DNA of 64,000 nt from Blastocladiella emersonii ATCC 22665 (taxonomy: Eukaryota; Fungi; Blastocladiomycota). Where the stretch lies: contig JANHCV010000004.1 in assembly GCA_025594325.1 (NCBI GenBank), positions 186,001 to 250,000 of the forward strand. The letters are read 5' to 3'. The notes beneath the pieces are model-generated. The model made no database searches, was not told the origin of the DNA, and worked only from the letters and a program-made list of their open reading frames with translations. The stretch's first letter is position 1; every line of letters starts with the position of its first letter. Below are positions 11,963-38,621 of this stretch, piece by piece. Both the position numbers and the translations under genes were made by a program.

Positions 11963-12068
11963 GAGGTCGCGCCTGGTTCGCGCCGCCGGACGCGCTGCGC
12001 CTCAATATAGAATCACGTGCTCACCCTGAGAGGCATTCCGATAGACCGATTCGAATAATAGCTCTGTA

Positions 12069-14470: not shown

Positions 14471-14709
14471 GCCCAGCGCCGTCGAAAGTTGATCGATAAT
14501 TATATATTGTTTGATTTCCGCAAAGCATTCAGCTCTTTCGTAAGGTGAGACAACTTTGAGCTCAGTCGCGCCAACGCGTCAAGGGCGCAGATCAGGCGTC
14601 ACGTGATATCAAAACGCGTCTCACGCGTGAGACATCGGAGAACCGCGGTCCCTCCGCTCTCGCCAGGAAACCGATGGATTGGCGAGGGTCAAAACTGGAT
14701 GAGATACAT

Positions 14710-17700
14710 TTACTTCCACATGTAGAACTCGTAGTGAAGTTTGGGAAGGGGAATGGTGGAAAGACAAACAACGTGGCCCTGCGCACGCTCCTCGCGGACA
14801 ACGGCGCGGGCCTCGATGGTGTACATGGGCAAGACGTGTAACACGGGGTCTTTCCTGATCGTCGCGTGGAAGCCCGCCCGCAGCCCGCACGAGTTGGCGT
14901 AGGTCGGGTGGTACTGGTCGGGATCTTGCGGCGAGTAGAGCTCCACAAGCGCAAGATAGTGGTCGCGGCCAAGCAGCCTACGAGGAGCGTGAGGTCAATC
15001 GGTGGGCGGAAATCTTTTGGCGCTTCGGCGCGAGGTTGAGCGTACGTGCGGATGAAAAAGTAGTGAACACGCGCGAGCGATATGCTCATTTCGTTGTTGC
15101 CGGGAAAGCGGACGTAAACCCAGCTGTTGCGGGCTGTGCGAGTATCGCACGCCGACAGGGTCACGCCTCGAAATTTCGCCAGGCGGAACCAGCGCGCAGT
15201 CGCAGTTTCGAGAATCGGGTCGTCGACCTCGTTGGCGTACAAGTCCGAGTAATGGTAGCGGATCAGGGCGTCCAGATCGCGTGTCGCGGACGGGTGCGGC
15301 GACGAGTACGGGCACTCCCTCGAGAGGATGATCGAGTCCATGCACGCACCCGAGTACGGCGAGACCGTGTCACGTCCCGTTGAACCGCTCGTACGCGAAG
15401 CACCACGTCTGCTGCGGCGGGCCGTAGTTGCGGATGTCGTCGAAGATGTGCGTCGCGTTGTGCGCGTTGATGGTGAAGAGCTTGGGTATGTTCTTATCCA
15501 GAAACGCGTAGTCGAGGAACGCAAAGTACTCGCGCTTGTCGTAGTCGAGCTTGGCGTCCGTGATCATGGGCTGCGTGATGGTGCGCGCGAACTCGACGAA
15601 ATGTGCCCAGCCGCGGCGGTGCACCTCGGGCATGGCGACCTTGGCGAACAGGTGGTTGCTGAGGTGCGTTATAAAGTTGCGCAGCTCGTACGCCTTGAAG
15701 GTTGAGAAGCCCAACTTGAAGCCCGCTGGAAGCCGCCCAATCTCGGCCGGGATCGTAATCTTCTTCATCTCCTTCTCCATCTGCTCGAGCATGTTGGGCT
15801 GGAGAATGATGTCCTTCTTCTTGACTGCGGCACGCGACGCCTTGTCAGTCAGACAGGTGCCGTTGGTGTAGAACGTGAGCGCGCGCCGCCCGATTCCTAG
15901 ACGCGTTGCGTGAGAACGTTATTAGTGAGGTGAGCGAGCAAATGCCCACAGCGCAGCCCCGTACCCAGATACACGCAGTGCATCACGTCCGTGACGGCGT
16001 GTTTTCCGACCTTGAGGTACGGCAGACGCAGGAGCGACGAGTAGCGAACGCCGTGCGTCTTGGTGATGTTGTTGCGCTCCGTGATCGTCTTGGCGTTGAG
16101 CCACTCCTCGGCGTAGTGTCGATGTTCTGCGTCGGTGCGAGGCTCGCACGCCTCGTCGTGGCGGCCCGTGTACCCATGCTCCATGTTGCGCTTGCACCGA
16201 GTGCACGCGGCATGGCCCTCGTGCCCAATGAAGCCACACAGCTTGCGCATCGCGGGCTGGTCGGCCGAGATGAGGATGAGCGCGACGCGCAGGCGGTACA
16301 TGCGCTTCACGCCGTTGTGGGTAAGCTCAACGAGGTGGCCGTTGTAGTACAGGTCGAGGAGCTGACACACAATGATCTCGATGTAATGGTCGAGTTGTTT
16401 GAGCTTCGGTTCGCGTGGACCGGGCAGGAGGGCGAGCAGGATGCGGTACGCGATCTTCTCACGCACGGCGAGCGGCAGGTTGAGGAGCGTGAAGTAGATG
16501 CCGCCGATCGAGTAGTGCTTGTGGATCTCGAACCAGTCGATGTTCGAGCCGAGAGCGACGCGCACCTCGATGGCGTTGTCCGGGTCGCCCGGTTTGGGCT
16601 CCGTAAACGAGCGGAAGAATGGCTGGGTTGGATCGAGGGGGCACCGAATGTCGTTGTTCCACACCGCGCCGTGGTACAGGTGCGAGTGGAAGTCTGGCTC
16701 CTCGCGAAGGTTGCAGTCGTATTCGCAGAACGGGTTGTTGCCGCGCGACTTCTCGCTGAGGTCGGCCGAGTTGTTGGTGTAGTCGAGTACGCCGTCGCGC
16801 GCGTAGAGGTCCCCGAGCACCTGGGCCAAACTGGCGACTGGGTACGGGGCGACTGGTACGCCGTCGGACACGACGAGCTCGCCACACGGCTGCGTCTTGC
16901 GGAACGCCGTGTTCTTGCAGTACAGCGTGTCCTTGGGCCCAAAGTCGTCTGGCGCGAGCACCTCGTGGCACTTTGGACACGCGGCGAAGATGACGGGCTT
17001 GATGTCAAACCCGGTGTTCTCGCTCATCGACTTCCACAACAAGTGCAGCTTGTGGTCGTCAAACTTGTCCGATGGCTTGGGGATCCACTCGGGCTGGCAG
17101 GGAGCCTCGGAAACGATCTCCTGCACGTCTTGTTCAGGCAGCCTGCGGCGCAGCGCGTCGAGGAGGGCGCGCCTGCGTACGAGCCTGTCCCAGTGACGCC
17201 GCAGCGTGCGGTTGTACCCCAAAATGTTGCCCTCGATGGCGGCGCGCGGGAACTTGCGGACGACGGCGTCGACGCAGACCTTGATGGCCTCAGCGCAAGA
17301 AAACGGCTGATACCCGAACAGCTTGTCCACTCGAGCTGCAAGCGACATGTGAGCGACAGCTTCTACACGCGAGAATCGTTGAATCGTGGGCGGTGCATAT
17401 CACGAATAACGCGAACAAGTCGAGACGTACGAGGGCCGGTGAAAATGCCGCGCATCTTCTCGTACAGCGCCAGGAACGCCTCCTCGCGTTCAGCGTGCAG
17501 ATTGTCGGCCTCGAGCTTGAGCTCGGGCTCGCCGCGGTCGCGCGCGTTGTCCGCGTTGCCAACGCGCGTGTCGTCCGCGTCACGGGCGCGCGCGTCGTCC
17601 GCGTCGCGTTCGAGTGGGTCTTCCACGTCGCAGTCGCGTGGATCGTCCACCTCGCGCCTGCCGAGCAGCGTGAACAGCTCGCCGTGGAGCTCGATGTCCT

Positions 17701-18556
17701 CGCGGCGCGACTCGTCACCGTCGTGGTCGTCATTGTGAACCGCCGCAGCAGTCCCACTGCCGCCCTCGAGGTCAGACGATGGCGACGGGGGTCGAGAACC
17801 AGTTGAGTCGCTTGGGCGACGCGCGGCGAGAAGGACCGCGGACCGAGCCGCGACACGGGCGTGGATCCAGCCCATGACGATGGCCTGCGTCGCTTCGAGC
17901 GGTCCCTCATTACCGCACAAGCGATAGGGAAGGCGCGTCTCGCGGACAAGCTGACGAAGCGCGGCAGGAGGAGCCCGACGGGACGTCGGCGGATGGTCGG
18001 GCGCAGACTCGGACGCAGAAACGGGCGCATCGAGTTCTCGTGGGTCGAGCGGGCCACTGTCCTCGAGATTGACGCCCACAGCCGAACCAGGCCCGGAACT
18101 GCCGCCAGTCACGGGCCCAGGTGCCAGCTTCTGCGCATTGGCCAACTTTTTAAGTCTTTGGCGCTCGAGGATGATGGCGCGGATCTCCTCAGCGGTGGGG
18201 AGCGGCTGCCCGAGATGGTCCAGGTTGTTGTAGCGGTTCTGGAAAGTTTGGATGGTTCAAGCCCAAGTGCCGCTGCCCTTCATTCGACGGAATCGTGTCT
18301 CGTCGTAGAGGTAAATGAGCGCCTCGCACGCGCCAGGATGCGTCATGTGGACCGGATCCACGCGGTGCTTCTTGGCGGTCTGCGTAGTGACGACAAGTCC
18401 GCTAGGGCCAGCTTCTGCAACGCAGATCGAGCATGTGCAGGCCTCTTGATCTTCCACAGCTTGCCCGTGCTTGAAGTTTTGACGGAGGCGCTTCGGAGGA
18501 AACGGTTCGTGCCGCGTCGACTGAAGCGTCGCGGATCGGTCGGCGGGCGGGCTCAT
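14710..18556 (-). CDS. CACTA/EnSpm (CMC superfamily, Tnp2/Transposase_21-like) DDE transposase, multi-exon; one junction possibly frameshifted
   Basis: Motifs IDWF, LPGPREPK, ADQPAMRKLCG, CTRC, DVMHCVYLG, EIGRLP, KAYELR, TINAHNATHI and YGPPQQTWCFAYERFNG; N-terminal CTCSIC...KKH. Introns 18361-18239, 17430-17363 and 15964-15897 and one near 15047-14980 restore frame. The junction after ERFNG (15373-15319) is a weak intron or a frameshift. Confidence 0.9.
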
Positions 18557-18839
18557 GGTGAAGGCACGGCGACACGGCGACAAGTTTTCGTTGCGGATAA
18601 CGTCCGAATAGCTTACTTCTTGCTGTATGACGGTGATCACGCATGGTTGCAAGTGGTCGCGCACCCTGGGACTGCGCGACACCCGCGGCGCGTGACGCGT
18701 CAACGCGTCTCGCGGAGCACGTGCCAGGTGCGGGCTGCGCACTGCGGCTTGTTGGAGCCGAGGCACCAGCCCCACCGTCGCCGCCGACTATAAAGTCCGC
18801 CGGCTCCCCGCCTCCCTCCCTCTCTTGTTCACCACTTGC

Positions 18840-19511
18840 TGCAACAAGCGTTTTCCCTCGCCCACCATGTATTGCTGCCGCTCAAATTGAACGCGGACCA
18901 CCTCGGTATCATGCATGTACTTCCCTTGTTGCCTGCGGCCGTACCTTTGTCGATCCTCGACCTGACCCAGGTTTGTCGTCACATACAGCCCCGCTGTGCG
19001 CCGACGGCTCCAGCATGGTCATCTTCCGCCACAAGTACCGTTGAGGCGTCCGCGCAAGGTACGCTGCGCGCACGTTAGGCGACTCGCCGCTCGGCGCTGA
19101 CTCTGCCCCGCGACAGGTTATCTGCAGCTTGCTCAACTCGCGATTTCGTCGCACGAACATGCCAGGTTTGCCAAGCGCTGGTATGGAGTGATGTTCCCGT
19201 GACTAGATACCGTGTCCACGAACTCACGCCGTGCGTCCTGTTGCCCCATGTAGCCCAACTCGCGCCTTGTCAAGGTCCAGCTGATCTCGTATAGGATGGT
19301 ACGTGCATCCCATGCCAGTCCCACCCTCTCCCACTTGACTCCTGTGCTAACCGACTCCCCTTCTCGCCGCTCTGCCCACAGATACCCGCGCGACTTTGTG
19401 CAACTGCACCAAGCTCGTCAAGTTGATGGCGAGGGCGGCTCGCGGCCATGGCGATGGCCACCGTTGCTGGTCAGCCCATGCTTAGGTGCTGGGGGTGGTC
19501 GTGCGTCCTGA
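18840..19511 (+). pseudogene. Spliced gene remnant divergent from the transposase, with in-frame stops
   Basis: Two clear introns (GTACGC...GCTGAC...CAG near 19039-19097; GTACGT...GCTAAC...CAG near 19299-19381) with stop-interrupted exon sequence. TATAAA at about 18789. Confidence 0.4.
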
Positions 19512-19879
19512 TGCAGCAGTTCTGGTCAGGCTCCCTGTCCTGAATGTAATAAACTAGTATTCAATTTATCTGCAGTATTCGCATCAGTGAGAGCATCAGT
19601 GCTGGTATAATTAGTGCCGTGCTGCGTGGCTGCGCGCGGCCCAGACCGCTGAGCTGGTCCAGTTATAATAAATTGTGGCGCGCTAAGCCTTACCGCGGCG
19701 ATCTGATCGAATCAATCCGCAGCCGTTCAAGCCTGCGCCTCACTTCAGATTCACGCCACAACGCCACGTCGCTCAAGCCGCGGAAGCTTCCTTCTCAGCC
19801 CAGCCGCCCAGGGCTCAAGCCCAGGAATAACTGTTTTTGACCGTCTTTTTGCACTGCGCGCCGCTCAAAGACGGCTGTG

Positions 19880-22800
19880 GCTTCCCTCCATGCTGCGCTT
19901 GGTGTGGTTATGCTGTTCCACCCCAGCACTGTCATTGCCTTGCCCCTCACCTACGTCAACCATGGCCTTGTCCACCCAGCCACTGCCAACGTGACCATTA
20001 CCATGGGCGGCGATGGCAAACCCGCCTTCACTGACGCCTAGGTCATCACCATAGCCACAGTCCATGACCTTGGCAAGTCGCTGCGCAACAACAAGCAGAA
20101 GTCGACCGCGACCATTTTGGAGCTCAAGCTGTAGACCAACGATTCCAAGACCATCATCCAGGCCCTCAAGGACCAGATCGCCATGAAGGAGACCGCCCTT
20201 GGCAAGGTGGCCGCAGAGCGCAACACCCACACAGCCAACCTGGCCATTGCCATTGGCAAGAAGGAGAACCTTGACTCCAAGATCCAGTCGCTCCAGACCC
20301 AGCTCGCCGACCAGGAGAGAACTATTGCCCAGAAGAACAAGCTCCTTGTCTTGTACCTCACGGGCCAAAACTTGGGCCAGAACTTGGGCCAGAACACGGA
20401 CCAGGCCCCTAACCAACCATCATTTTCAACTCCACTGGTGTAACTGCCAGCATGAGCCTCCTCCCACAAACCCCGCCAACCATTGACCACAACGTGGACT
20501 TCTGGAACTCAGACTTTGGTTTGAGAACTTCCTGACCAGCAAGCTGCGCAACCAGATTGTTTGCCAGCAGTTTGAGCTGTTCCTTGACAAGACCTGCTCA
20601 AGCTCACTGCGACCTACGGCTTGGAGCGCAAGATGGTGCTGGCCCTCACCCGTTTGTGATCAAGGACGCCCTCTACATCCCCAACCTTGCCTTCCTGCTC
20701 CTTGCGCTGCTCCCGCTGGTGGGCCCAGGTACTGGCATGGGCGTCAAGATGTTTGACAGCAAGGTGCACCTCACCATCCCCAAGTTGGACCTGCACACCA
20801 ACACCATTGAGGAGCACATCATCCTGTTCATGACCAACAAGGGTATCCCAATCCTCAACGCCATGATTGGTTCAACCCCAACCAACGTGTCCGCCCTGTT
20901 CATGACCCACGGCCTGGACCCAGCTGATAGTGACACCATCACATCCCGCTCTTTGACTTGTCCATTGGCGTGTACTTGGGCGGTTTTGCAAGCACCCAAT
21001 CCACACGTTTGATGGCAACCAGCTTGTGCCAACCACCCACAACCCACCTCCTGTTGACCTTGTCACGGCCATGTCTGTTGCTGCAACCACGCTCAACAGG
21101 CTCCACAACAACCAGCCCAACATGGCCAATGCGGCTGGGCTGGCCCTGATGATGTGTGCGGCATCCATTGCCAAGACAACTGCGGCCACCGTCAGGGGAG
21201 CCACCTTGCTGGCCACTGTTGGGGGAGCCCTGCCAACAGAAGTTTTTTTGTTCTTTGGTCCCGCGTGCACTCTTCTTGCTATGGCAGGGGGAGCGCCCTA
21301 ACCAGCAGCTCTGCCACCACCGCCTTCTTCATTGCCCAAGGTATTGACACCATCAACATTGAAACTGGTGGCATCTTTGGCTTTGCCAACGCCACTGCCA
21401 GAACTGCTTGGCTTGAAACTACGCCACCACAAGCTGCCTGCACGCACGCCAAGATTGAGATGGTCATCACCTTGCTTGGCGCTCACTGCCGGCTTGGGCA
21501 CATTGGGCACAAGGCCCTGTCCAAGATCTTTGCGTGCCCCAAGTACAGCCTTGTCAAGGATACAGCCAACCAGCACACGATCCAGGAGTACCTTGACCAC
21601 ATGTGCATTGCCTGCTCATGCTCCAAGGCCAAGTTTGTGACGCGCTTCCCATTGGACTCTGAGTCCACGGAGCCGCTCAAGCTGCTCCAGGCGGACATCA
21701 ATGTGCTCCACTTGGTCCCCAACCTGCACGGGTACAAGTACTACCTTGCAACTTCTCCAAGGGGTTGTGGATTGTCCTGCTCAAGAACCGTGCAGACGCC
21801 GCCACCAAGCTCTGCATCCTCATTGCGCAACTCAAACGCGCGACCAAGCACCAGCTGCGCTGTCTATGTGTTGATGGCAAGGGCGCCTTCACCTCAGCCG
21901 CCTTCATGAAGTATTGCCGCAACGGCGGCATCATGCTCAAGAAGACGGCGCGTGGCAACCACAGCGGCAACGGGTCAGCCAAACGGTTCCTGTGCACCAT
22001 GAACAAGCGCGTCTGTGTCTTCCTCATGCACGTTGACCCGTGCATCCTTGGCTACTCGATTGACTGGGTCAAGCGCCTGTGGTATTACGCAGCGCGTCAC
22101 GCTGCCTACATCTGTTTCTGGATGCCGCGTTGCGATCTCGGCTGGAAGTTGCCATACAAGATCTTCCTTGGCAAGAAGTTGTGCCTTGCCAACATCTGCC
22201 CGTTTGGTGTCACAGCCCTTGTGGCGCTGCGCCACGGCACGCACACCCATAAGCTTGAGCCAGGGTTCCGCCCGCACATCTTCCTCAGCCACTCAGACAA
22301 GGACAGCAACATCCACATCCTGCTCAACGTTGCCACCATGGAGATCATCACATCGCGCAACGCCATCCTTGACGAGGCTGGCCTGCTCCGCCGAGTCACC
22401 TCAAGCCACAAGGACTTTGTGTGCATGATGAAGAACAACAAAACGGAGTTCATGCTCAACGCCGGCGAGCTGAACGATGGTAAGGACGCCAACTACGTGG
22501 AGCCCTTGTCCTCGCGCACTGCTGCAACAACCTCCAGCTCGCCCTTGCCAACCATGACAACCCGCAGTATGGCGCAGGCCGCCGCCAAAAAGGACCGTGC
22601 GGTTGCCCTCGCCTCAATCCTTGGCAAGCCCAAGAACCGCGCCAAGTTGCGCTGCGCGCTGTGGGCCAAGCGGCTGGAGCAACAACATGCTGCTTGCCAA
22701 GTCAAGAAGCTCAACATTGAGATCAAGGCCCACACCATTGCACTTCTCGCCCACTCCGCTGTCCCCCCTGATCCAGCGCCACAAACACCATCACAATGCA

Positions 22801-24830
22801 GGACACGCAGCCAGCGCCACCTCCCGCAATGGCCCCGCAAGATTGACCCAATCATTGCCCTTGCCATGGCCGCCGTCGCCGTGCCCCAAAACTACTGCAA
22901 GTCGCAGCGGTCGGACCTGCGCAATAAGTGATACAAGGCCATGATGAAGGAGATCAAGTCGCTCATCCTCAACAAGACGTGAACTGTGGTCACAAAAGAC
23001 CAGGTCCCTTGCGGCGCTGACATCATTGGGTCGCAATGGATCTTTGCGCACAAAGCTGCCAAGGACATCCACAAGGCGCGCCTTGTCGCGCGAGGAGACC
23101 AACAACGCGTTGGGTTTGGCGTGTTTGAGACGTTTGCGCCAACGGTCACGTACACGTCAATCCACACCTTCTTTGCAGTTGCCGCGTCTTGGCGCTGGGC
23201 GGTACACGCCATGGACGTCTTGCTGGCCTACGTACACGCCAAGCTGCCCGTTCCCATGTACATGCGCCCGCCACCCAGTATTGGTGCCGCCAACAACAAG
23301 ATCTACCGCCTTGACAAGTCGCTGTACGGGCTCAAGAACGCTGGTTGTGAGTGATACCTCCACTTGCGCTGCATCCTTGAGAAGATTGGGTTCCAGGCCA
23401 CCACTGCCAACTTGTGCGTGTTCACGCGCAACATCAATGGCAAGGTCACGTCAATCGCGTGCTACGTTGACAACCTCCTTGTCTGCGGCGACAACCCCAA
23501 GCAGGTCACCAAGGTCAAGGCCGACCTCGCTGCTGTCCTAAACATCAAGGACCTTGGTCTTGCCAACTCGTTCCTCAACCTTGAAGTCGTGCAGGCCAAC
23601 GGGTAGGTACATCTGGATTGGCCAGGCCAGGTACACAAACAACCTCATCAAGCAGTGGGACCTCAGGCCCACGCGGGCTGGCATCCCAATCTCCCAGCTG
23701 CTGTCAATGGGTGTCACGGGTCCCGCAACGTCTCGACCACTGCCAGTTCTTACACATGGCGCCAACCACAATGAACCAACAGTATCATTGTCCGAGTCAA
23801 CCAAGGCCACGGTCAAGCTTGACATCGCGTGTACGCGCAAGTACCAGTCGATCCTTGGCGCGCTGCTGCACCTTGCCACTGTGTTGCGGCCCAATATTGC
23901 GTTCGCAACCAGGATCGCGTCACGCCGTGCATCATGTCCGACCCTTGCCAACTTGAAACTTCTTAACCAGATCTGCCGCTACGTCGCACGCACGCCACAC
24001 CTCAGGCTCAAGTTCAAGAAGGGCTTTGACCTGCAGAACTTGATGGAGAGCTACGTCGATGCCAACTGGGCCGGCGACCAGGTGTCGCGCCACTCAACTA
24101 CGGGCGTTGTCATCTCGCTTGCTGGCGCCGCCATGTCCTGGATGTCCAATCGCTTGGCATGGGTCGCGCTGTCCACAGTTGAGTCAAAACTCAACACAAC
24201 CACCAAGGCAATGTGCGAGGTCATCTGGGGGCGCGAGCTTGTTGAGTCCATCACGTACACCAAGCTTGGCACGCATGTCATCTTCAAGGACAACCAGCCC
24301 CTCACTGTGACCAACAGCGTCGCCGCTCCAATAAGCACATCTCGGTGCGCATGCACTTCCTGCACAAGAAGCGCGAGGCCAAGGAGATCAAGCTCAAGGA
24401 GGTCGAGAGCGAGAAGAACCTTGCCCACTTCTTCACCAAGCCCACTGTTGCCCGTGACAAGTTCAACAAGTCAGTGATGGTGGTACTTGGCCTTGTAAAG
24501 CACCCGCTTGTCAAGACCAAGGCCACCCACGCCTCCCTCCAGCCAAGAGCCAGGGGAGAGTTGGCAAAAAGTCTCCAAGTGGGTGCGAGACATGAGACGC
24601 GTCTTGCATCGCGTCATTCCATCTGATAGTTGTGCCATCACATGGCCCGCCAATTGGGGCTTCCAACCTCCCTCTCGCCGCCCAGTTCCTGCCGCCTCCG
24701 CCGGCATCTTGATTTGGCACCCTCTCCCTCCCCATTGTGTTCTGGATCGATCCTACTACATCAGTTCTTACCTTGTGTGTCACTACTGTCTCCTGGTCGT
24801 TCTGCACATGTAACTAGCGACCTCTGACCA
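19880..24830 (+). mobile_element. Degenerate, 5'-truncated Ty1/copia LTR retrotransposon (gag-like coiled coil, integrase, RT, RNase H, PPT, probable 3' LTR)
   Basis: Copia domain order: KDALYIPNL, HCRLGH...CIAC (integrase Zn finger), integrase core (DGKGAF, GNGSAKR), RT (KARLVARG, LYGLKNAG, YVDN), RNase H (DANWAGD...STTG). PPT AGGGGAGAG at 24552-24560. Many stops and frameshifts; no matching 5' LTR. Confidence 0.92.
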
Positions 24831-25009
24831 ACCTCGTGCGTGAGCGCTACACTTGTGTCAAGTGCGATCGCATCGCAATCCAAACCAGCTTTTGCTCTTC
24901 CATTTGCGTGTGAAAGCGTGATGAAAGCGTCCGTCGCGACGGTCGCGCGCTACGGCGGGAATCCGCGCAACAACAAACACAACCCCATGGCATCGCCTCG
25001 GACGTTAAA

Positions 25010-28000
25010 ATGCCCAGTCTAGTTTGGGAGTCGTTGATTTGGCCGAGGTCAAGTGCAGTCACAACGTGGCGACGGAGTGGGGTCGTCAAGGAGGTCCCAA
25101 ACTGCCGTTTAATGCGTGAATCTGGTCGGGGAGTGTTGAGTCCTGCTGGCGCAAAGTTCGAATCTGGTAGGCTCGCCCCGACAGCCCTGACCGCAGCGGT
25201 GGTGCCGGTTCTCCTTTTTCCCTCGCTGTGCTCCTTTTTTTCGGTCCTGCCAACACGTTTTCGCCCCCGCCAGAATTGTTGCTGCTTTTTGTTTGCTTTT
25301 ATTTTTGAATTGAACTCGAGTGGGAACGATCACCTGTACTTTCTTTTCGAGCGCGACTGGCGAGGCCGAGACGCACCGCACGCGTCTCGACGCGTCGCGA
25401 TTGGAGTGGCAGGGACGTCACGTTGATGTGAGAAGCGAGCGAGCGAGTGGCGGCGGCGCCGCCCAGCTCAGCTCGCGCGCGCGACTTGACCAAAACTCCA
25501 CCCTAGGTAGCACGGTGAATCATGGAAAACGCTCCCATGCAACTACATGCATTGCATTTATCTCGTTCAGGCCATGCGAACAGTGAGTGCCGCTCTTGTC
25601 CCGCACGGACTCTAGTGCAGCCAGCGCGGGTCGAGCTGAGTTGAGCGGGCGACGACTCGTTGCTGTGGAGCCCCGCGCCAGGCCGTCGTCAGCTTTCCAC
25701 CCGTCGCACCTTGTTGCGCTTCGATTCTACGAAGTACTGGTGCGTGCGCTTATCGCTGCTGCGCCCGAATTGGAAGTCGTAGGCGATGATGCTGGCGCGT
25801 GATATCATTGCCTCCTCGACACGTCAATATTTTGAAGCACTTGGGGCAAGTGCCAGAATTGTGGAAGTTTGCAAGCGAGAACACGGACATCATGCCTCGG
25901 TCAACCGAACACTTGCACGTATTGCTGACTGTGCAGTGTAGACGATGATTTCAGTGGGCGAGCAGGGTCGCGCGGTCCGGCAGAGGACGAGTGCGCGTGC
26001 CGCCGTTTGGAGCTATTCTCCCGACGGGCAGAGCGTCGTCATTCTATTTGGACGGGATGCTTGGTCGTCGCGGCGGCCGAACTGGGGAACGAGGTAAATC
26101 AACAATGTCGGGAACAGGGAGAGGATTTGGCGCGGACATGCGCTTCAGATACTTGAGGAGCTTGAGGAACTTGGTGGCCATGGTCGCCTTAGGAACCCTG
26201 ACAACGCCGTGACGGCACGCGAGCATCGCGATACGGCGCATGTCAGTCACCTGCTCAAGGTTCTGGAGCGGCAGGTTGGCAGCCAATCGTCGCTAGCATG
26301 TTCACTCCAGACAGGTTGAGTGGGGCTAGATATCCACAGGGCTAAGATGCTCGTAGATCACAGTGATCTAGTAAGATCATCGTGACCCACCGCTGCGTGG
26401 TGACCCCCCATTTCCCAATGGAGTCCTTGAGGCGCGCGAGGTTCTCCGCCAGCGAAATTTGCGGCGGCCACGCGGGTACGTGAAGCACTGCGTCGTCGGC
26501 TTGGACGTACATGTTCCAGCCAATGGCGGCCTCGACCACAATGACCATGGCCTCGAAAACGTATCCTTGCTCCAATATACACGAATGACGATGGCCACGA
26601 CAAGTTTCATTCAGGGTAACCCTGTCTTTGCGTGACGGTATTTCATCCGCCGAATTCCGTCAAAAAACTCGTGCTTGACACGACGATATGAGGTTAAGTT
26701 GAAGCGTACTCGACTGGGAGGAAGCTTGGCACGATGGACGTGCGATCTTGGCGGAGATGAAGATCGAGGTGGTGAAGAGGTTCACAAGCGGAGACGGTGA
26801 AGATGTTCACGAGAGGAGACGGTGAGGAGGTTCACGAGAGGACAACAGGCTGTATGGTGGCTAATACTAGCAACTGGTCAAAGAAACAAGAGAGAGAGGG
26901 GATGCGGGGGCGCGTCGCCCGATGTGAGCGGGCCGACGCGTCGCTCGGTGAGGTGAGGCGGTCCGCGGCGATGACAAAGGAGATCGGCGCAGTGCGCGTG
27001 ACACGCGTGACGCAGGCGGGGTCGCACGCGTCCGGTGACTGTGGCGCAACGCGGTCACGTGTACTTGAACTGGTTATGAGCACGAGCGTTGCTTTCTCTG
27101 CACCCGCGCCGCACCCGCCCGCTGGTAAGCTCATGAACGAGCAGCGCAAACTTTCGCGGCTACATGCGCGTCGTAACAATCGAGCGGCTCCAAATCACAC
27201 TCGCCTTATCTTGCGCGAAAGGACACTCGTTGTTGCTGTCGCTCAAATCATATAAGCTTCTCATACACGGAATCGGACTCGTTGGACAGCATCCTTGGCG
27301 TGATCGCTGACTTGATCGCATCACCAAACCGCGCCCCAGTCAAACAAAATCGATCGACCATCGATCCACCCTTTGAATGGGTCGGACCCAGTGCAAGTCG
27401 ATCGACGTCGACCCGATATGTTACGTTTCCGATTGATCTGGCCTGATGCGTCGATCCAGTTTGCACGTGCACTTGAACGACGCGTCGTGTGACCACTCGA
27501 ACAACTATCGAACGAGATCTTTCCCGCCCGATTGATAAAAGTAACATGTTGATCGGGTCCGCTGCAAGCGTCAAACGATTACTCGAAAGACTCGGTCTGG
27601 ACCTTGAGTGACGCACCGAATGAGATGCCATTTGGTATATATATGCGCAGTAGCACATGCTGGATGGGTGGGAAGGACAGGAAGAGCCGACGAAGCGGGC
27701 CGCAGCGTGGTCGGCGACCCGCCCGTGCGACGAGCGACGCGTCGGCGCGCAGGCGGTTGTCCGTGACACACGCCGCGAGCCCCGTCGCCTTGGCCGCGGT
27801 CGCCGTCAGTCCTGCTTCTTGACTGCTCGCGTTGTTGATGGACTTGAGCTGCTCGACGGCCGACTCGAGCAGGTGGACCTTGAAGGCGGTCGGCGAGGGC
27901 AGCGGCGCGCGGTGCAGCTGGTTGACTTGAGGAGGTACTCGAGCAGCAGGTGGTGGGGACGCGCGGGGACCGAGTTGATCTCGTACATCAGCGTGAGTCC

Positions 28001-31000
28001 GAGTTCTCGACCCGGCCGTGAACGCAACCCGACTCGACAGCGAGTGCAGCAGGAGCCTGGCTTGTTCAGCTACTGCGAATGCGTAACGGTCAACCAGGAG
28101 TCGGGATACGGGAAGGTCGGACCGGGTTGCAGACCTTGACCATGAACGAGTACGCGGCCGAGTGCGGGCTTGAGGGCAGCGCCGACCGGTCGGTGGGCGA
28201 GCGCCGCAGCAGCTTGCCGTGGTAGATCGAGCCTATGGGTGACGTGGCGGCGACGAGTGAGCGATGATCAAGAAGGTGTTGGGCGAGCGGGTCGTGTCAG
28301 CAGGCACCAGGTCAGACAGAACCCGAGCGCACCAGCTAGCTCGCGTGCGGAAGAACCGGACAGCGCCGATGTGCCAGGCGATTAATCACGACGAGTACAA
28401 GAGGGATGGAGCCCGTACCGCATGACCTCGGGCGTGCCGCAAGGGCGGACGACGAGGCGGACCTTGCCGCTGCAGCGTGGTGTACTTGATGACCTACTCG
28501 AGCCGGCCGTGTCAGTGTTGGTCCGCGAGGACGCCGACCGAGTCGCATGCCTCGAACTGGAACTCGCACGCGCAGCCGAGCGCGTGCTTGAGGCCAGCGA
28601 CGACCCGAGCAGCGAGACCTCGCAGCGTGTTCTTGATCGTAGTTGAGTTTTGTTGTCGTTGACCGAGGCTATGGGCGACGTGGCGGAGACAAGCGAGCAA
28701 AAAGTCAGGCGAAGAGTCCAATCGACGCGAGCACGCGAGCCACGTCGCCAAGACCTGCACCGACGGACAACACGAGCGAGACCGCTCGAGAACTCGAAGC
28801 TCGGCGGTGCCCGCACGCAGCGCGAATCGCGCCGAGAGCGCGAAGGAGAAGGACCGTACCTCGCGGGCTTGGGCGCGTTGTGCGCGAGTTGACGCCGCAG
28901 GTGAGGGTCAGCCCACTTGCCGCTGCTTGGCGTACTAGGTGCCCTACTCATGGCGGCCGCGAACGTGTTAGTCTCGGTCCACAGGAGAGGTAGACCGAGT
29001 TGCACACCACGTACCTTGTCGCGACCTTGTTCAGGATCAACGCCGACGCGTCTCCGCGGACCTCACGAGAGCCGTTGCAGCTTGAGGTGCTCGAGGTGCT
29101 CGTCGAAGGCTAAGAAACAGGGCAAAGCGGTCGTAAGGTGAGTGCGTCAGTGAGCGAACGGACAGCCGGCGCGAAAGGCGTGGGAACGCGGCGTGGACAT
29201 TGAGCGCAGCGGGCGCGAGTCCCGTCGACGCGTGCAGGGCGTGTCGGCGGACTCGAGGCATGACTGCAGATACACGTCGCGGGGGAGGAGAAGGCAAGAG
29301 ACGCATACTGTGGAAGTCACCAAGCGGCGCGGGCCCGTGGCGGCGTCGGGCGGATGCGCGTCGACATGAGTTACATGGAGGTCGAGGGGTGGTGGTGCAG
29401 GCGGTTGCACGAGGTCGCGGGTATCGAGCGGGTCGATGGCATGGTTGGTGGTGATGGGGCGAGGGAGCGCGAGCCGCCGCGAGCAAAGTCCCGAAACGAT
29501 CGACGCGCTCCCGTGACGTTTGCTTCGACGCGTTTCGCTCCTCCCTTCGCAGCAGCGGCGCTCCCTCCTCCCGGCGGCAGCACCGCGGCGTCGCACCTAT
29601 GACTGATCCATGAATTACTTCCTGCAAGCATGTGGCTGCGCCGTGAGCTCTGGAATTTGGTCGATACAGACCTGCTGGCAAGCAAGCCGCGCCGCGGCGC
29701 TCCTCTCGCGTGGAGAAGGTCGTCACGGCGGTCGTGAGGGCTCTCACATCTTGAAGCTTTATGAGTCGCAAGTAAGGTGTTTTGCTCGCGTTGTTGCCCT
29801 CCGTCGCGCTTGGTCGAGCGGAAACGCGCACCTGGCTCGTCAACCTGGAGTTGGACGGCATGCAGCTCGAAAGCACGGTCGTTGAGCATTTCCACCTGTA
29901 CCAGTCGGTGCCGCACGTCGTTCCGCCGGGCCTCTACGTCGTGCAGACGTTTCCTCTCCGTCCCACGCAGCCCGCCACGTGTGAGTTCCATCCACATTGT
30001 GCCGCCGTTGGCCATCTCGGCCTTCCTTCCTGTCGCGCCGAACGGGAACCGCCCCTCGTTGGCGCACTAGGGCGGGTACACCGAGTACCTCATCGCCGTG
30101 TACGACGACGACGCGAGCCTCACGCTGCTCACGATGCCGCAGATCTCCAACTTTCTTGACTCAATGGACCGCCGCGATCCCGAAGGCGCGAACCCGACGA
30201 TTGGCAACGCGCTGGAAGCGCACGAGCCTGAGCATGGCGATACAGTGCAAAGTCGATGCGCTACTTAACGGATAGCTCATTCTCATCAGTGGATTCGGAG
30301 CTGCAAATTAGCTGGAACTCAATCGGCGCGAGTGGAGACGTCCTTTGAGGCACGTCTCGCGCCGCTCGACCACTTGTCTGACATTCTGCTGGGACAGATC
30401 GGCATTTTATCAATCGGCGCGGGGCATATCTCGATCCACACTCGTTCGATGAGTCGTTCGAGCTTTTAACTTGATCGATCAATCATGTCCGTAGGTCGAA
30501 TGACAAGCAAGTCGACCAACAGGTCGAATGACTTGAGCTCACGCTGATCAATACTCATTCGACGCGTGGATCGATTTTCTCGGCCATCTCGAACGAGAAC
30601 AAGTCGATCGACTCTGGATCGACTTGGCGGGTCCGGCGCGGCTTGGTGATGCTCATGACTAGTAGGGTCAGCACACCGCAAAAGACGGGGCTGGCAGCGA
30701 TTGCAAAGCAAGCGATGAAGAGGCCATCGTGAGGCACGCCGGCGAGGATATGGTGATGATGGGACCGATCAACACGTTCATATCGTCAGTTACTGGAATG
30801 ATTTCGTGCGATGAACGGGCTCGTGCCATCGGTTAGTTCAGTTAGTTCAGGCAAGCGAACGCGGCAAAGGAGCTGAATTTCGGCTCATCTGCCAACTCGG
30901 ACAAGGGAGAACGAGGAGGAAACACGAGTTTTGTATACGAGGCTAGTAAATTTGGCGGTGAAATCCCAAGGATCCGGATCACACCGTCTTGCCGAGATTC

Positions 31001-34000
31001 TGGCGCTTGACCAGCTTGGCGTAGAGACCCTTCTTGTCGAGCAGCTCAAAGTGCGTGCCCTGCTCGACCACGCGGCCGTCCTTGACGACCAGGATGAGGT
31101 CGACGCGCTGGATCGTCGACAGACTACATACAGGTCGGCGCGAGAGTCGGTCGGTCAGGTCAGGAGTTGGTGGTGTTCTCGTTCGCGCAACCAAGGAAAA
31201 GGAACGTACCGGTGCGCGATCGTGATGGTCGTGCGGCCCTGCGACGCCTTGTCGAGCGTGTCCTGGACGATAACTTCAGACGCCGAGTCGAGCGCCGAAG
31301 TCGCCTCGTCCAGCAGTAGACAGGCAACTGGGTGCAAGCGGGTGCGAGCGGGTGCAAGGGGGAGAGGGAGAGGGAGAGGGAGGGGGAGGGGGCACGCGAG
31401 TGAGTCGGGAGGGTCGGTCGGTCGGTCGGTCAGCCGTGACGCGCGACAAGAAAACGTACGGTTCGGCCGGATCAGGGCGCGCGCAATGGCCACGCGCTGC
31501 TTCTGCCCGCCCGACAGCTGCGACGAGGTGACGAGCGTCTCGTACTTTTCGGGGAGGCCCTCGATAAAGTCGTGGATGTTGGCCGCCTTGGCCGCGGCGA
31601 CGACCATGTCCATGGTCACGGGCTTGCCGTCGGGCACGCCGTACTCGATGGCCTCGCGCAGCGTGCCAATGAACAGCGACGGCTCCTGCGACACCACGGC
31701 CAGGTGCTCGCGCATCGACTGCAGGTGCCACTGCCGCACGTCGGTCCCGTCGAGCTTGACGTTGCCCGCCGACACGTCGTAGAGCCGCTGCAGCAGCGCG
31801 AGCACGGAGCTCTTCCCCGAACCCGAGGGGCCACACAGGGCAAGTGATTTGCCGGCGAGCTGCGAAAAGTCGATGCCGCGGAGGATCGGCGCGTCGGGGC
31901 GCGTCGGGTACGCAAACTCGGCACCCGCGACCTCGACGGCGCCCGCCACGTCGACGAGCCGCGCGCCCTCGGTGCTGTCGATGTCGATCGGCGGCACGCG
32001 GTCGACGAGGTCAAAGTACGCAATGGCCGCGGCCTTGGCCTTCTGCGCGTTGCCCGTGAAGGTCGCCGCCTGCGCAAACGAGATGGACGCGAACAGCAGC
32101 ACGAAGATGACGCGGAACAGGTCGGCCGAGGTGATGACGCCGTCGCGGACGAACAGGTACCCGACGCCGAAGCACACGGCGTACAGCAGGAACTGCACGG
32201 CCTGCGAGTACCCGAACCCCCACGACCCGATGAGCGCCTTGCGGACGCCGATGCGGTACGGCGCCTTGATGTTCTCGAGGTACCCGTCGGCAAAGTCGCG
32301 CTCGCGCGCCAGCGACTTGACCGTCGCAATGTTCTGGATCGCGTCGCACGCGCGCTGCGCGGCCGCCCCGTACGCGAGCCGGCTCTTGCCAACGGCGCCC
32401 GTCGTCACGGCGGCCTCGAGGTACGACCCGAGGGCGAGGAACGGCACGGCGGCGAGGACGGTCAGCGTCATCTGCCACGAGTAGTAGAAGGCGAGCGCGA
32501 CGCCGCAGCCCATGGACACGACGAGCTGGATCAGGTTGGCGGCGTTCGGGCCCGTGAGGTTCTGGATCCGGTCGGCCTGCTCGGACAGCTGCGCTGTGAG
32601 GGTGCCCGTGCCGTGCTTCTCGTCGTCGAACCAGCCCGTCTCCTGGCGCAGCATGGCGCGGAACGCCGTCTCGCGGATGCGGCGCGTGAGCCGCTCGCCG
32701 GCGATCCCAAAGCACCCAAACTGGAACAGCGAGATGAAGAAGTTGCCGACCGTGAGCCCAATGAACACCCACGTCCACACGAGCGCCTTGCGCGTGAGCT
32801 CGTCCTTGTCCTGGATCGCGAAGACCGACAGCACCTCGGCGAGGATGATGCCGAACGCGGGGAGGAAGGCGCCGGCGACCGAGCCCATGAGCACGCCGAC
32901 GGCCAGGAACGGCCACTCCTCGCCCTGCAGCTTGACGACGCGCCACAGCGACACGGACCGCTCCTTGAGCAGCTTCTTGAGCTCGGCCTTTTCGCGCTCG
33001 GCCTTTTCGAACTCGTCGAGGGCGGGCTTGGTGGTGGTGGTGGTGGAGGCGAGGGCGTCCTTGGACGTGGCCTTCTTGGACTCGGAGGCGGCGGCGGCGG
33101 TGATGGCGGCCTGCTGCTCCTCCTCCTCCTCGGCACCGTCGTCGTCCGAATCGTCCGACTCGGACTCGGCATCGGCGGCCGTGGTGATATCGGCCGTGGA
33201 CGCCGTCTTGCGGGTCTTGAGCTCCTGCGCCTTGACGAGGCCGGCGTACACGCCGCCGCGCTGGAGCAGCGAGTTGTGGTTGCCGCGCTCGATGATCTGG
33301 CCCTTTTCGAACACGAGGATGACGTCGGCGTCGCGAATGGTCGAGAGGCTACGCGCGGGCAGGGAGAAGACGTGGTTAGTCGGGTCGCGGCGGCCCAAAA
33401 ACGCGCCGGGAAACGTACCGGTGCGCAATCACGATGGTCGTGCGGCCCTGCGACGCCTTATCGAGCGCGGCCTGGACAATACCCTCGGACGCCGAGTCGA
33501 GCGCCGAAGTCGCCTCGTCCAGCAGTAATATACGGGGTGCACCGATCAGGGCGCGGGCTACGCGGTCGCGGGGGTCGCGGGGGTCGCGGGGGTGAGTCGC
33601 GCTGGTGGTCGGACCAGTCAGACGCGGACACGGTCGAGAGAGCGTACCGATCGCGATGCGCTGCTTCTGGCCGCCCGACAGCAGGCTGCCGCGCTCGCCG
33701 ACCATGGTCTGGTACCCGTTGGGCAGCTTGGAGATGAAGTCGTGCGCGTTGGCGTCGCGGCACACCTGCTCGAGCAGCTCCTGCGTCACCACGAGCCCGT
33801 CGGGCGCACCGTACGCAATGTTCTCGGCAATGGTCGTGTCAAACTACATGTGGTACGACGAGCGTCGGTCAGTATCCGCTTCACGAAAGCATCGCCAAGT
33901 CCAAGTCGAGACAAGCGTACCAGAATGGGCTCCTGGCTGACCAGACCGACGTTCTGCCGCAGCCACTTGAGCGGCAGGTCGTTGATCGGGGTCGAGTCGA

Positions 34001-35219
34001 TGAAGATGGTGCCCGAGAGCGCCTCGTAGTACCGCTCCATGAGCTGGATGCAGGTCGACTTGGCCGAGCCCGAGGCACCGACCAGCGCGACCGTGGTGCC
34101 GGCCTGGGCCGTGAAACTGATGCCCTTGAGCACCTCGACGTCGGGGCGCGACGGGTACGCGAAGCGCACGTCGCGGAACTCGACGCTGCCGTCGAGCTTG
34201 GCCGGGGTCACGGCGCCGTCGACAATGGTCGGCTTGCTCTCGGCGACCTCGAACAGGCGGTACCCGGCGCCGCGCGCCTTGGACATGGCCTGGAACGACG
34301 GCGACAGGTTGATGATCGAGAAGGCGCCCGTGGTGATGGCGAACAGGCATTTCTACGTGGTGCGGGAGCGGAATCGAGAGGGGTGCGCGCGTCAGTTGCA
34401 GTCCGATAGGTGATGCGAGTGAGAGAGGGCAAGTACCAGAACGTCGCCGCCGCCAACCTCGCCGCTCACGGCGAGGGTCGAGCCGTACCAGAAACCGATG
34501 CCGAACAGCAGGTACAGCAGGCCGAAAAAGACGCCGAACCCGGCGCCCGAGATCCACGCCTTCTTCTCGCCCTCCTTGACGGTGCCGGCGAGCAGCTTCG
34601 AGTACTTGCGGAAGGCGCGGTCCTGGCCGCCGAACGCGGCGACGGTGCGGATGTTGGCGAGGGCCTCCTGGGCAACGGCGCCCGCGGCGGCGTAGGCCTC
34701 CTGCGAGCGGCTGGCGCCCGCGGCAAAGGCCTTGCCGACGACGATGCCCGAGATGCCGAAGGCGGGCAGCGTCGCGATCAGGACGAGGGTGAGGCGCCAC
34801 GACTGGGTGAAGGCGATGGCGAAGCCCGAGATGAACTGGATCGTGTAGGCAAACGCCTGCGAGGCCTTCTCGGAGATGCCCTCCTGGTACATGAGCGTGT
34901 CGGAGGTGAGCTGGGTGGTGAGGTCGCCGGCCTTGTGGGAGTCGAACCAGGCGAGGTCCTGGGCCATGACGGCGTTGATGAACTTTGTGCGGACGCGGCG
35001 GGCCTGGCGCTCGCCGGCCCACATCCACATGGCCTGCATCAGGTAGGCGGCGACCATGGTGCCGAGGCCGACGGCGACAAAGAAGATGACCTGGTCGATG
35101 ACGCGCTTGCGCAGCGTGTCGAGCGCCGCGGCCACGACGGCGGGCGGCAGGCCGGGCGTCGCGCGCACGCCCTCGTACACGAGGAACGGCTGCACAATGT
35201 CGCCGAGGATCACGGACAG
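25010..35219 (-). repeat. Right arm of the 10,210-bp inverted duplication
   Basis: Reverse complement of 1515-11724. Substitutions were seen only at 25533 (vs 11201) and 25080 (vs 11654). Confidence 0.97.
30979..35219 (-). pseudogene. 5'-truncated duplicate of the ABCB gene (lacks codons 1-153); may be rescued as a chimeric gene by splicing from an upstream exon at 35920-35291
   Basis: Mirror of 1515-5755 with the same introns. It begins at codon 154 (LSVILGD), directly preceded on the minus strand by GCTGAC...TTCCCCTTCCCCCAG. Confidence 0.85.
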
Positions 35220-36206
35220 CTGGGGGAAGGGGAATGTCAGCTAGTCAGCTTAGCGTCACTCTAAGGCTAGGTGCGAGACTGAAAGCGCACCAGAGACACA
35301 GCGCGCTCGGCTTCGTCATGGGGGGCGACGTGCAGCCGAGACACAGTCAACGCTCGGGATGAGCGGGGCCCGCGCGCCCGCAGACGATGCAGCAAGTTGC
35401 GCGGAGGTTCATGGGTTGCATGGCGTCGGTGGGTGGGTGCTGCGGGAGAAGCGACGCGACGCGACCGGACTCGTTCGCCACGACGGCCACCGCGTCGACA
35501 TCCGCGGGCAGGGCCCAGGGCAGGGCCCCTGACGTGGCGCTCCGCGTCGCTTTCGCCGAGCACCGTTCCCAAAGAGGTTTGACTTGCGGGCGGCGTGAGC
35601 GTCGGGGCGGGTCCGAGAACGCCCGCGAAGGGTTCTGTTCGGACCCCCAACCCTCTCGGCACGAGGCCGCCGCCGCCGTCCAACGCCCGCTCTCTCTCTC
35701 GAAACGCTACCATGTATCCTGCTCGCCACCGCCCATGACGCGACCAGACGCACCGAGGCGAACCGACCTGCGCCCGTAGCGCGGCCAGCGCGAGGCTCGA
35801 TCGCGCCCGATCGCGGCGCCGCCGCACGCACCCCGGCCGACCCCCTCTCCTCGCTCGCTCGGTCGGCGGTGGCGTGACGGCTGTCTCCCGTCTCCCACTC
35901 GGCAGTCCTCCCACGCTCATGGCGGCGCGGTGACAGGTTGGTGCTGGACGGGCTGGGCGGCCTGCTGGGCGTCCGCGCGCCTGCCCTCGCCGCCGTACAC
36001 GCCGCCCTGCTCGCCCTCGCCCTCCGTCCCCGCCGGCTCGCCGTGTGCCTCTTGGTGGCTACTCCTAGTCCACGCTCTCGCACTCCACCTTGCTTTCCGA
36101 CGCCCTCGGCGCATCGCATCTTGCAGCACAGCCCACCGTACGTCCGCACCCTGGGCTGCCCGGCGCGATCTCGCAACCGAGCGCTCACCCGCCCCGCCGA
36201 ACGTAG

Positions 36207-38621
36207 ATGCTGTCGAGCTCCTCCGGCACGGCGCCGCCGGCGCACGCCGCGTTCGGGGATCCGGCGCACTCGTGGCCGCAAGCGCACCCGTCGTCGGCCC
36301 ACGCGACGCCCGACCACCTCGCGCACCGCCTGCACGCGCTCGCCATCACGGACAACATGGAGGACATGGAGGTCACGCCCGGGGACGCGTCCGCCCAGCA
36401 CGCGTCGCCCGACGAGCTCGCCAACGACATGGGCGGCTTCCAGGTCGGCCACGACCACGGAGCCTCGCCTCAAGAACCCGTACCCGGACCCGCACCCGGC
36501 CATGCCGCTCCGACTGCGCCGTCGCCCGCGGCGGCCGAGATCCCCGTCGGCCTCCCCGCCGAGCCGTCCGGCATGGGTGCCTTCCTCCGCGGCACGCGCA
36601 CAAGCTGCAACAAGTCGCTCGTCGGCGCCAAACTGGCTGCCGAGCACCGGGAAAACGTGAAGCAGACCGCCGCCTGGGTCGGCAACGTGTTCGAGTCGCC
36701 CGAGTTCCTGCACGTCGTCGCCGACGGCGACATGCCCGCCGCCGACGAGGACGCCATGGACGTCGACGGCCGTGCGACTGGCTCCCGCCGCACCAACCTC
36801 ATCATGTTCGGCATCGCGCGCGCGCTCGAGGGGACCCACCAGCAGTACCAGCAGTACCAGCAGTACCAGCACCACCACCCGCACTACATCCAGGCCGCCA
36901 TGGCGCTCACCACGCTGCTGCAGCTGCTCGCCCTGGTCGTGACCGACATGTTCGTGTTCGAGTACTCGTACATGCTGTTGTTCCTGCTCGAAACGGCCAA
37001 CACCGCGACCCCGTGGCTGCTGCGCACCATCGAGCTCCCGCTGTCGATCTGGCTCGACCTGTCTGACCTCGACGACCATCCAGCCGTCGCCGTTTGCCAG
37101 TCGATGATCGCGACGCAGCCGGCGCTCACCATGACCGGTTACGCCTTCCTCAGCCTCCTCGCGCTGCTCGAATTGGACGGCGAAACGTTCTGGCAGCTGC
37201 TGACGTCGCAATTCCCGCACCGCCAACCGCAGCCCGACGCCCTCATGTTCGTCCGCCAGTACCTGTCGCAGTCGGCCATCCTTGAGGGTCTCATCCGTAA
37301 ACTCAACGAGTGTTCCCCGTTGACCCCGAAGCAGGCTGTCTACCGGGGCGGCGCGGAGATTTGCGGCATCGGCATGGCCCTCATGGCGCTCGTCCGCTAC
37401 CAGTGGCAGGACGCCTTCGCCCAGAGCCAGCTCGCGCCGCTCGACGAGGCGCTCGCGGTCCACCTTCCTCTCGCCCGGCACCTGGCGAGCAAGCAGCCGG
37501 TGGCCGCCGTCTACCTGTTCGGGCCCCGTACGTGCCTCAAGCTCGTGCCGACGAGCTTAGCGGTACGCAGCCCCAACACCAAGATGCTGCAGAAGCTGCT
37601 GACGGGGTACATGGACCGGGCCGGGTCGCTGTGGGCGGAAACCTTCGGCGCGGTTACGTCCCTTCGCTTTCTCACTCGTCCACGCCGCGCGCCCTGACGC
37701 TCCGGATATCTTCTAGTGATGTACGGGTGCACGACCTCGAGCAAGATGGCGTCCAAGCTCCTGTTCAAGGTGGTGACCACGATCCGCAAGGCCGTCAAGT
37801 TCGATGAGGACTTCCGGTTCACGCTCGCCCACTGCAACCGCGGCACCTTCCTCAAGCTCACCGACGGCGGCGTTCATCCCGACGAGCCCATGTCGGTCAA
37901 CGAGGACCTCGCGAAACAACTCGAGGAGGCGTCGCTCAGTTCGCCCGACCGGAACAAGATCTCCATGATGCCGTGCGACGTCCTCATGCTCCTGCTCGCG
38001 GTGACGGGGACCGAGCCCAACTTCGCGCCGGTGCTGTACCACGCGGGGTTTGCGCGGCTGGCCGTCGCGGCCGTCGGCGTTCCGTGCGGGCTAGACGGCG
38101 CGGGTACCGCGTACTTCCAGGCGCTGCTCACCGCGCTCGCCACGACCGGTGCGGCCGCCTACTACGTCACGGTCCTGCTCGAGGTCATCTTCGGCGAGGA
38201 CCCCAACGGCTACCTGATCCATTTCATGCACGCGCCGCTCCTCGTGTCCGGGACCACGGCCGGCTGCACGTCCTCGGACGTCGTGACCCGCAACCTGTGC
38301 TGCAGCAACGAGGGCATGCCGTGCTCGCTGTGGGTCCAGCCGGTGTTCGTCGCGGCGCTCGTGCACCTGATGCACGCCGCGGCATCGACTTTTGGAAGCT
38401 ATGCCATGTCGCCGTCGCGCGCATTCGCGCGCTGGCTCGTCCAGAACGTCGACCCGGCGACGCTCGACGAGATCCGGGGCTACCTCAACAAGGCCAAGAC
38501 CCGCCCCGACGTCGCCCGTTGCGCCTGCGGGTGCTACGCGGACCCGGTGCTCGCGGCCGCTGTCGAGATCCTGTCCCAGCACCCCGTCGTCGCCTCGGCG
38601 CTCATGAACACGTACCACTAG
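36207..38621 (+). CDS. Lineage-specific alpha-helical hypothetical protein (at least two coding blocks; may extend to ~38980)
   Basis: Long ORFs 36207-37697 and 37716-38621 with host-like codon bias, a probable 5'UTR intron at 36138-36206, and an intron-like segment near 37653-37716 whose phase I could not resolve. No family recognised. Confidence 0.6.

Follow-up and report, generated by a model that had tools for sequence, protein, structure and literature searches.

Partial and chimeric gene duplicates, in which a copied fragment recruits flanking unique sequence as a new 5' end, are known from the jingwei-type chimeras of Drosophila, and Katju and Lynch reportedly described partial and chimeric classes among the duplicates of Caenorhabditis elegans. 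Human Y-chromosome palindromes are gene-bearing, and their near-identical arms are kept alike by arm-to-arm gene conversion. We analyzed a 64-kb stretch of Blastocladiella emersonii ATCC 22665 (assembly GCA_025594325.1, contig JANHCV010000004.1, ~186001-250000), called the window below and the source of all coordinates unless stated otherwise. In it, the outer edge of a palindrome cuts a gene for a full transporter of the ATP-binding cassette subfamily B (ABCB). The cut copy begins at codon 154, and the unique flanking DNA that it abuts ends in a 71-nt element with the signals of a spliceosomal intron. From the letters, a sequence-only reading had proposed that this junction created a new, in-frame chimeric pump gene by exon capture. 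We conclude that the locus is a real, truncated and probably non-functional duplicate at a palindrome edge, to which we assign a probability of roughly 0.55.

The locus belongs to the known kind of partial or chimeric duplicates. As in those, the breakpoint falls within coding sequence, the copy has no 5' end of its own, and the adjacent unique DNA supplies an ATG, an open frame and in-frame splice signals. Unlike the jingwei-type and C. elegans duplicates, the recruited "exon" has an anti-coding codon signature and the chimera is known from DNA alone; the part that was lost is, in addition, a structurally essential transmembrane helix. The palindrome resembles those of the human Y chromosome in its gene-bearing 10.2-kb arms of 99.98% identity, its 13.3-kb spacer and its twofold read depth, but differs in that its outer boundary cuts a gene and no diverged homology is found beyond the arm.

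The left arm occupies 1515-11724 on the plus strand and the right arm 25010-35219 on the minus strand. The arms are 10,210 nt long and carry two mismatches (99.98% identity), in a window with a GC content of 58-73%. The left arm contains the intact ABCB gene from codon 154 on, together with downstream genes, and the right arm is its mirror copy. Right-arm identity begins at 35219, the mirror of position 1515, which is the first base of codon 154 in the intact gene. The sole two differences between the arms, at left-arm coordinates 11201 and 11654, both fall in the innermost 0.5 kb, beside the spacer. Immediately past the spacer-side end of the left arm lies a tandem array of a ~27-28-nt motif containing TTGCGCGA(A/T)CC (11772-11962), and the inner end of the right arm has no counterpart of this array.

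Read evidence came from three DNA runs, all from the assembled strain, in the form of Logan unitigs. In one run (X1), the arm unitig stops precisely at 35219 and has a depth of 289, about twice the depth on either flank. Its last 30 letters are shared by two unitigs: one of 36.3 kb (depth 132), which extends into the right flank, and one of 714 nt (depth 141), which does not and which, its sequence not being readable, is presumably the left flank. A second run (X2) gives the same pattern, with an arm depth of 47 vs 15-25. Because the arm stands at double depth with two equally deep exits, as a fixed two-copy structure gives, the duplication is real, and the duplication and its junction are present in the organism. 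The near-identical inverted arms are thus found at double copy in the reads, and the breakpoint named by the sequence-only reading is borne out by the read unitigs, with the graph branching exactly at 35219 in X1 and the same depth pattern in X2. Between 1-1514 and the right flank, no similarity was detected by blastn with a word size of 7, by tblastn of the intact N-terminus or by anchored alignment (score 0), and the two ends of the spacer show no mutual similarity. Since no diverged homology continues past the arms, nothing points to an earlier duplication of greater extent. A GCTGAC 6-mer shared near both flanks was considered as a trace of homology and judged to be a chance match.

The intact gene, H9P43_003805 (1056-5755, plus strand), was placed by mapping the annotation to the DNA; it has seven exons and encodes a 1386-aa full transporter of the ABCB1/multidrug resistance (MDR) type, as seen from alignments with orthologues and PDB entries. 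Its PDB matches are ABCB4 and ABCB1 structures (E ~1e-82). Translation starts at an ATG at 1056, and exon 1 runs uninterrupted from 1056 to 2297, with no intron at the breakpoint position. The N-terminus aligns gap-free with the orthologues of Catenaria, Allomyces, Paraphysoderma and Geranomyces and with human ABCB4 (E = 1.9e-82 for exon 1), and the large exon is 54-59% identical to proteins of Catenaria and Allomyces named "multidrug resistance protein 1". Within the protein, the breakpoint follows ...GYGVLTPI and precedes codon 154, so that the break falls right after the residue aligned to ABCB4 L73.

The 5'-truncated copy (30979-35219, minus strand) was delimited by arm and protein alignments and by hydropathy, and comprises codons 154-1386. 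In each of the two annotated products, Pfam finds ABC_membrane (PF00664) twice and ABC_tran (PF00005) twice within a single chain, and thus the alternation of transmembrane and nucleotide-binding domains (TMD-NBD-TMD-NBD) of the type IV exporters ABCB1 and ABCB4 (P-glycoprotein, MDR). Unlike those exporters, the right copy begins past the equivalent of L73: it has no N-terminal tail, none of the conserved LF(K/R)YAD motif and, in the first transmembrane helix (TM1), no hydrophobic core. The left copy has a complete first transmembrane domain of six helices including TM1, and the right copy does not. Hydropathy in the TM1 region peaks at the lost 19-mer (mean Kyte-Doolittle value 1.93). The earlier statement that half of TM1 is replaced therefore understates the damage, as both the TM1 core, its most hydrophobic 19-mer, and the LF(K/R)YAD motif are gone. 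Because it begins at codon 154, the copy has neither a promoter nor a start codon of its own.

The intron-like element lies in the unique flank at 35220-35290 (minus strand) and has a GTGCGC donor, two CTGAC motifs, a pyrimidine tract and a CAG acceptor that abuts the arm. On the minus strand the sequence reads ...GCTGTGTCTCTG, then GTGCGC...GCTGACTAGCTGACATTCCCCTTCCCCCAG, then CTGTCCGTGATC, and the last base of the element (35220) adjoins the first base of the arm (35219). The 71-nt GT-AG element abutting the breakpoint is thus present as the sequence-only reading had described it. Splicing would produce the predicted junction GTGTCTCTG-CTGTCCGTGATC, a phase-0 join at the boundary of codon 154 that would be in frame, also as proposed.

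Two sets of introns served for comparison. Within the window, ~15 introns were obtained by mapping annotated proteins onto the DNA and by adding others flanked by coding sequence; an intron finder that relied only on flanks rich in GC at third codon positions (GC3) was far too permissive, and a stricter version yielded a small usable set. Donors of these introns are mostly GTACGT or GTACGC, with GTACTT, GTGCGT (two, at 41682 and 12470), GTACGA and GTATGA besides; the acceptor is TAG in most and CAG in some, and lengths run from 58 to 192 nt. The second set consists of B. emersonii introns from expressed sequence tags (ESTs), of which stress libraries gave 105 and non-stress libraries 35; they are 55-333 nt long (mostly 60-79) and all have a CTAAC-like branch site (Georg et al. 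2009; PMC2773782). The supplementary intron table of that study, which covers the stress-library set, counts donors as gtacg 50, gtgcg 18, gtatg 8, gtgag 3, gtaag 2 and gtctg 0, branch sites as ctgac 41, ctcac 33 and ctaac 9, and acceptors as gtag 49 and ccag 7.

Flanked by G and C, the element reads gtgcg...gctgac...cccag over 71 nt, and so combines the second commonest donor, the commonest branch site and the modal length class. It conforms to the grammar of a B. emersonii GT-AG intron (donor GT[A/G][C/T]G, branch CT(G/C/A)AC, YAG acceptor, 55-333 nt). Its branch motif and pyrimidine tract had been likened to those of the other introns of the gene, and the EST-verified grammar agrees in donor, branch and length; by these signals the element looks splice-competent and would pass for a textbook member of the EST set. 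Using dinucleotide-preserving shuffles, we estimated how often such a signal ends at a random strand position. Donor, branch and YAG together precede a random position with a probability of 7e-4 under a loose definition, 1.4e-4 with at least 60% pyrimidines and 3.6e-5 with at least 70%, values that are optimistic because the motif was defined after the element had been seen.

Upstream of the donor, the proposed first exon (35291-35920, minus strand) is indeed a stop-free frame of 210 codons that runs from a gccgccATG at 35920, with a second in-frame ATG at 35713, and the suggested length of ~1443 aa is correct for the chimera (210 + (1386-153) = 1443). As a coding exon the frame does not hold up, with GC3, codon log-odds and Pfam all negative and frames of such length commonplace. 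GC content at its first, second and third codon positions is 0.77, 0.69 and 0.69, so that the third position is not raised over the others; real exons in the window have a GC3 of 0.91-0.98 and a second-position GC of ~0.45, and GC3 is 0.84 even in the disordered tail at the N-terminus of the intact pump. The 210 codons score -1.1 bits per codon in codon log-odds, whereas ABCB exons withheld from training score +1.0 to +1.1. Neither codon usage nor GC3 periodicity gives the new exon a coding signature, and a Pfam search with four frames of the flank returned no match. The translation is Arg-rich, with 43 R+K vs 15 D+E.

The sequence-only reading had itself cautioned that long stop-free frames are common at this GC content, and this was well founded: 31-39% of six-frame codon positions in the window lie in runs of at least 210 codons, and in the 1-kb flank, the three minus-strand frames stay open for 265, 263 and 119 codons. 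The open frame, the ATG and the in-frame join carry little weight, because stop-free runs are so common and a coding signature is lacking. By its composition, the DNA upstream of the element reads as ordinary GC-rich non-coding sequence. In the frame of an ATG at 35421, a 118-codon open stretch (35350-35706, minus strand) shows a mildly raised GC3 (0.80-0.88), and its translation is less rich in Arg than those of the remaining flank frames. The ATG at 35421 is the first in this stretch, which gives no Pfam match and is possibly a chance feature or a decayed exon.

The deposited GenBank locus is letter-identical to 26207-48621, and the protein of the gene at 36207 shows 100% identity to H9P43_003811. 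The GenBank annotation contains a different in-frame chimera across the same junction, H9P43_003810 (1252 aa, 35421-30979, minus strand). This ab initio model has a first exon of 12 codons, MQPMNLRATCCI (35386-35421, minus strand), in a frame other than that of the 210-codon exon, and an intron 1 of 145 nt (35241-35385, minus strand) with donor GTCTGC and acceptor CTGACTAG, placed by mapping the annotation to the DNA. After this intron, the model reads seven flank codons (35240-35220, LTFPFPQ), which are the pyrimidine tract of the 71-nt element taken as coding sequence. Annotation in the genome paper was done by funannotate with ab initio predictors, and the text makes no mention of RNA-seq or a transcriptome. 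Elsewhere in the palindrome, identical arm DNA was annotated as a 225-aa product at 7103-8664 (plus strand) in one arm and as a 146-aa product over a shifted range, 27579-28951 (minus strand), in the other. Ab initio models are unstable here, because identical arm DNA received different models in the two arms.

With two in-frame solutions over one junction, such solutions are easily found and are not evidence in themselves. Judged by its splice signals, the 71-nt intron is clearly the better candidate of the two. The 12-codon exon of H9P43_003810, with a donor type unseen among EST introns, resembles the spurious ab initio first exons that are placed on 5'-truncated fragments. Unlike those cases, an alternative intron exists here that is much better, so the locus is not merely an annotation artefact.

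That the breakpoint and the intron signal meet to the base is a real coincidence, at a level of roughly 1e-4. Three explanations with comparably small priors can be offered: a chance motif, the first intron of a former divergent neighbour of the gene next to the junction (H9P43_003811), and a relic of a lost ABCB intron. An unrearranged allele, which the sequence-only reading suggested looking for in relatives, did not turn up: for H9P43_003811, homologues are lacking in other genomes, and the ABCB orthologues sit among different genes, those of Catenaria and Allomyces showing no synteny with either flank. Nor was any trace of a displaced downstream exon found at the other edge of the arm, where the 179 nt at 24831-25009 look non-coding.

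In our reading, a 10.2-kb segment with its start inside exon 1 of H9P43_003805 is present a second time, inverted, 13.3 kb away. The copy, starting at codon 154, was placed next to the DNA upstream of the divergent gene H9P43_003811 (36207-38621, plus strand; 741 aa, lineage-specific, one intron), whose 987-nt upstream region is the flank. As it happens, this flank terminates in a sequence that bears all the hallmarks of a B. emersonii intron; it most likely is, or was, the first intron of a transcription unit once located there, the alternative being a rare chance motif. Most likely, the copy is a non-functional or at best weakly transcribed partial duplicate. Should the divergent promoter region fire toward the copy, the 71-nt element could be spliced and a chimeric transcript result; such a transcript across the junction is possible, given the splice signals. 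We infer both the non-functionality of the copy and the origin of the element.

Three points weigh against a truncated, non-functional copy beside a fortuitous signal. A real pre-existing intron that ends exactly at a random breakpoint is a ~5.6e-4 event, by the 19,375 introns in 34.27 Mb given in the genome paper, and this leaves the exact coincidence unexplained. The element is better than chance readily gives (4e-5 to 7e-4 per position) and fits the EST grammar, including the GTGCG donor. Finally, both chimeric N-termini rebuild a hydrophobic 19-residue window (mean Kyte-Doolittle 1.67-1.77), and could possibly provide a makeshift substitute for TM1.

Among the rival explanations, the main one is that the 71-nt element is spliced but yields a non-coding or untranslatable chimeric RNA: possibly a former 5' untranslated region (UTR) or long non-coding RNA (lncRNA) exon joined to the truncated ABCB body, in which upstream ATGs would block translation, or only internal ATGs in the second transmembrane helix would be used, giving no functional pump. 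The intron grammar fits this; every measure applied to the upstream exon marks it as non-coding, which is what one expects of a UTR or lncRNA exon, and in this compact genome it would be usual for H9P43_003811 to share the 1-kb region with a divergent neighbour. A start-codon-adjacent intron also appears elsewhere in the window (acceptor-like site at 40374, at PDA1). It would, however, require the breakpoint to hit the last base of the intron exactly (~5e-4), and the downstream exon that should have been displaced has left no trace at the other edge of the arm. We regard this alternative as possible though doubtful. A translated chimera of ~1443 aa (or ~1374 aa from the ATG at 35713), that is, gene birth by capture of a de novo basic N-terminal exon onto an ABCB body without TM1, is unlikely. 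Transcription would begin in the 286-nt gap beside the start of H9P43_003811, in a divergent promoter region; the signal looks competent (GTGCG 18 vs GTACG 50, CTGAC the commonest branch, 71 nt in the modal class), the junction is phase 0 and in frame behind a gccgccATG context, and it would place a hydrophobic 19-mer behind a positive head, which fits an N-in topology. Opposed to this are the composition of the exon (GC3 of 0.69 vs 0.77 and 0.69 at the other positions; -1.1 bits per codon), the lack of any family match for a frame whose 210 codons are commonplace, the loss of the LF(K/R)YAD motif and the TM1 core, and the choice of another model by the ab initio pipeline. The evidence thus gives no support to a newly born pump of 1443 aa that carries an Arg-rich head of 210 aa.

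The exact coincidence would need no chance at all if the element were the 3' part of an old ABCB intron, the duplication having broken inside the intron and the intact copy having later lost it precisely. A TM1 intron does occur at the same place (GYG, then I/A...) in Catenaria anguillulae, Allomyces macrogynus, A. arbusculus and Paraphysoderma sedebokerense, at 10181-10297 (L003), 10298-10376 (L004), 1301-1371 (L007) and 1214-1298 (L006) in the coordinates of the respective loci. In both B. emersonii paralogues, H9P43_003805 and H9P43_004455, the first exon is uninterrupted at that site (window 1497-1499, codon G148), and from this pattern an old TM1 intron looks to have been lost in the B. 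emersonii lineage, five codons from the breakpoint. As a source of the element it is improbable, since the intron of the orthologues, in the GYG codon, misses the breakpoint by five codons (~15 nt) on the upstream side, similarity stops at the boundary (anchored alignment score 0), and a precise intron loss would be demanded in one arm while the arms stayed 99.98% identical. That H9P43_003810 is itself the true gene, a 1252-aa pump with a substitute TM1, is very improbable. It is present in the public annotation, the GC3 of its own frame is slightly raised over 35350-35550 (0.80-0.88), and its junction gives a hydrophobic 19-mer (mean Kyte-Doolittle 1.67); but the annotation is ab initio with no RNA used, the donor GTCTG occurs 0 times in the EST table and is absent among the ~15 window introns, the TAG acceptor follows CTGAC immediately and leaves no usable branch-to-AG distance for that motif, and the same pipeline modelled identical arm DNA differently. 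An assembly artefact, with the inverted copy or the junction not present in the organism, is likewise very improbable. The assembly was built from PacBio HiFi reads with Illumina polishing, as stated in the genome paper; near-identical 10-kb arms are about as long as the mean HiFi read (10.5 kb), and every read set derives from the assembled strain. Against this stand the twofold depth of the arm unitig (289 vs 132 and 141), the branch exactly at 35219 with flanks of equal depth in X1 and the same in X2, and the two fixed differences that separate the arms.

Read as a truncated duplicate, the locus means that H9P43_003810 stands in GenBank as a 5'-truncated copy with an implausible ab initio first intron, for which a better-supported alternative splice model is now offered. 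It also indicates that palindrome edges in the B. emersonii genome can cut genes. If the chimera is expressed, it would be a dated, sequence-resolved partial duplicate that gained a first exon and an intron from non-coding DNA; we know of no gene-birth cases described in this early-diverging fungal lineage.

The 13.3-kb spacer between the arms (11725-25009) is transposon-rich according to its open reading frame (ORF) translations. Read by eye, these resemble a KDZ/CACTA-type transposase (15897-17348) and a copia integrase and reverse transcriptase (~21154-24477); no family search was made. Farther along the window, PDA1 (pyruvate dehydrogenase E1-alpha) has a 390-aa ORF, a product not on record in exactly that form, vs a GenBank model of 460 aa that includes an upstream exon. 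A strong acceptor-like site with CTAAC, a pyrimidine tract and TAG lies at 40374 on the minus strand, 10 nt upstream of the PDA1 ATG at 40361.

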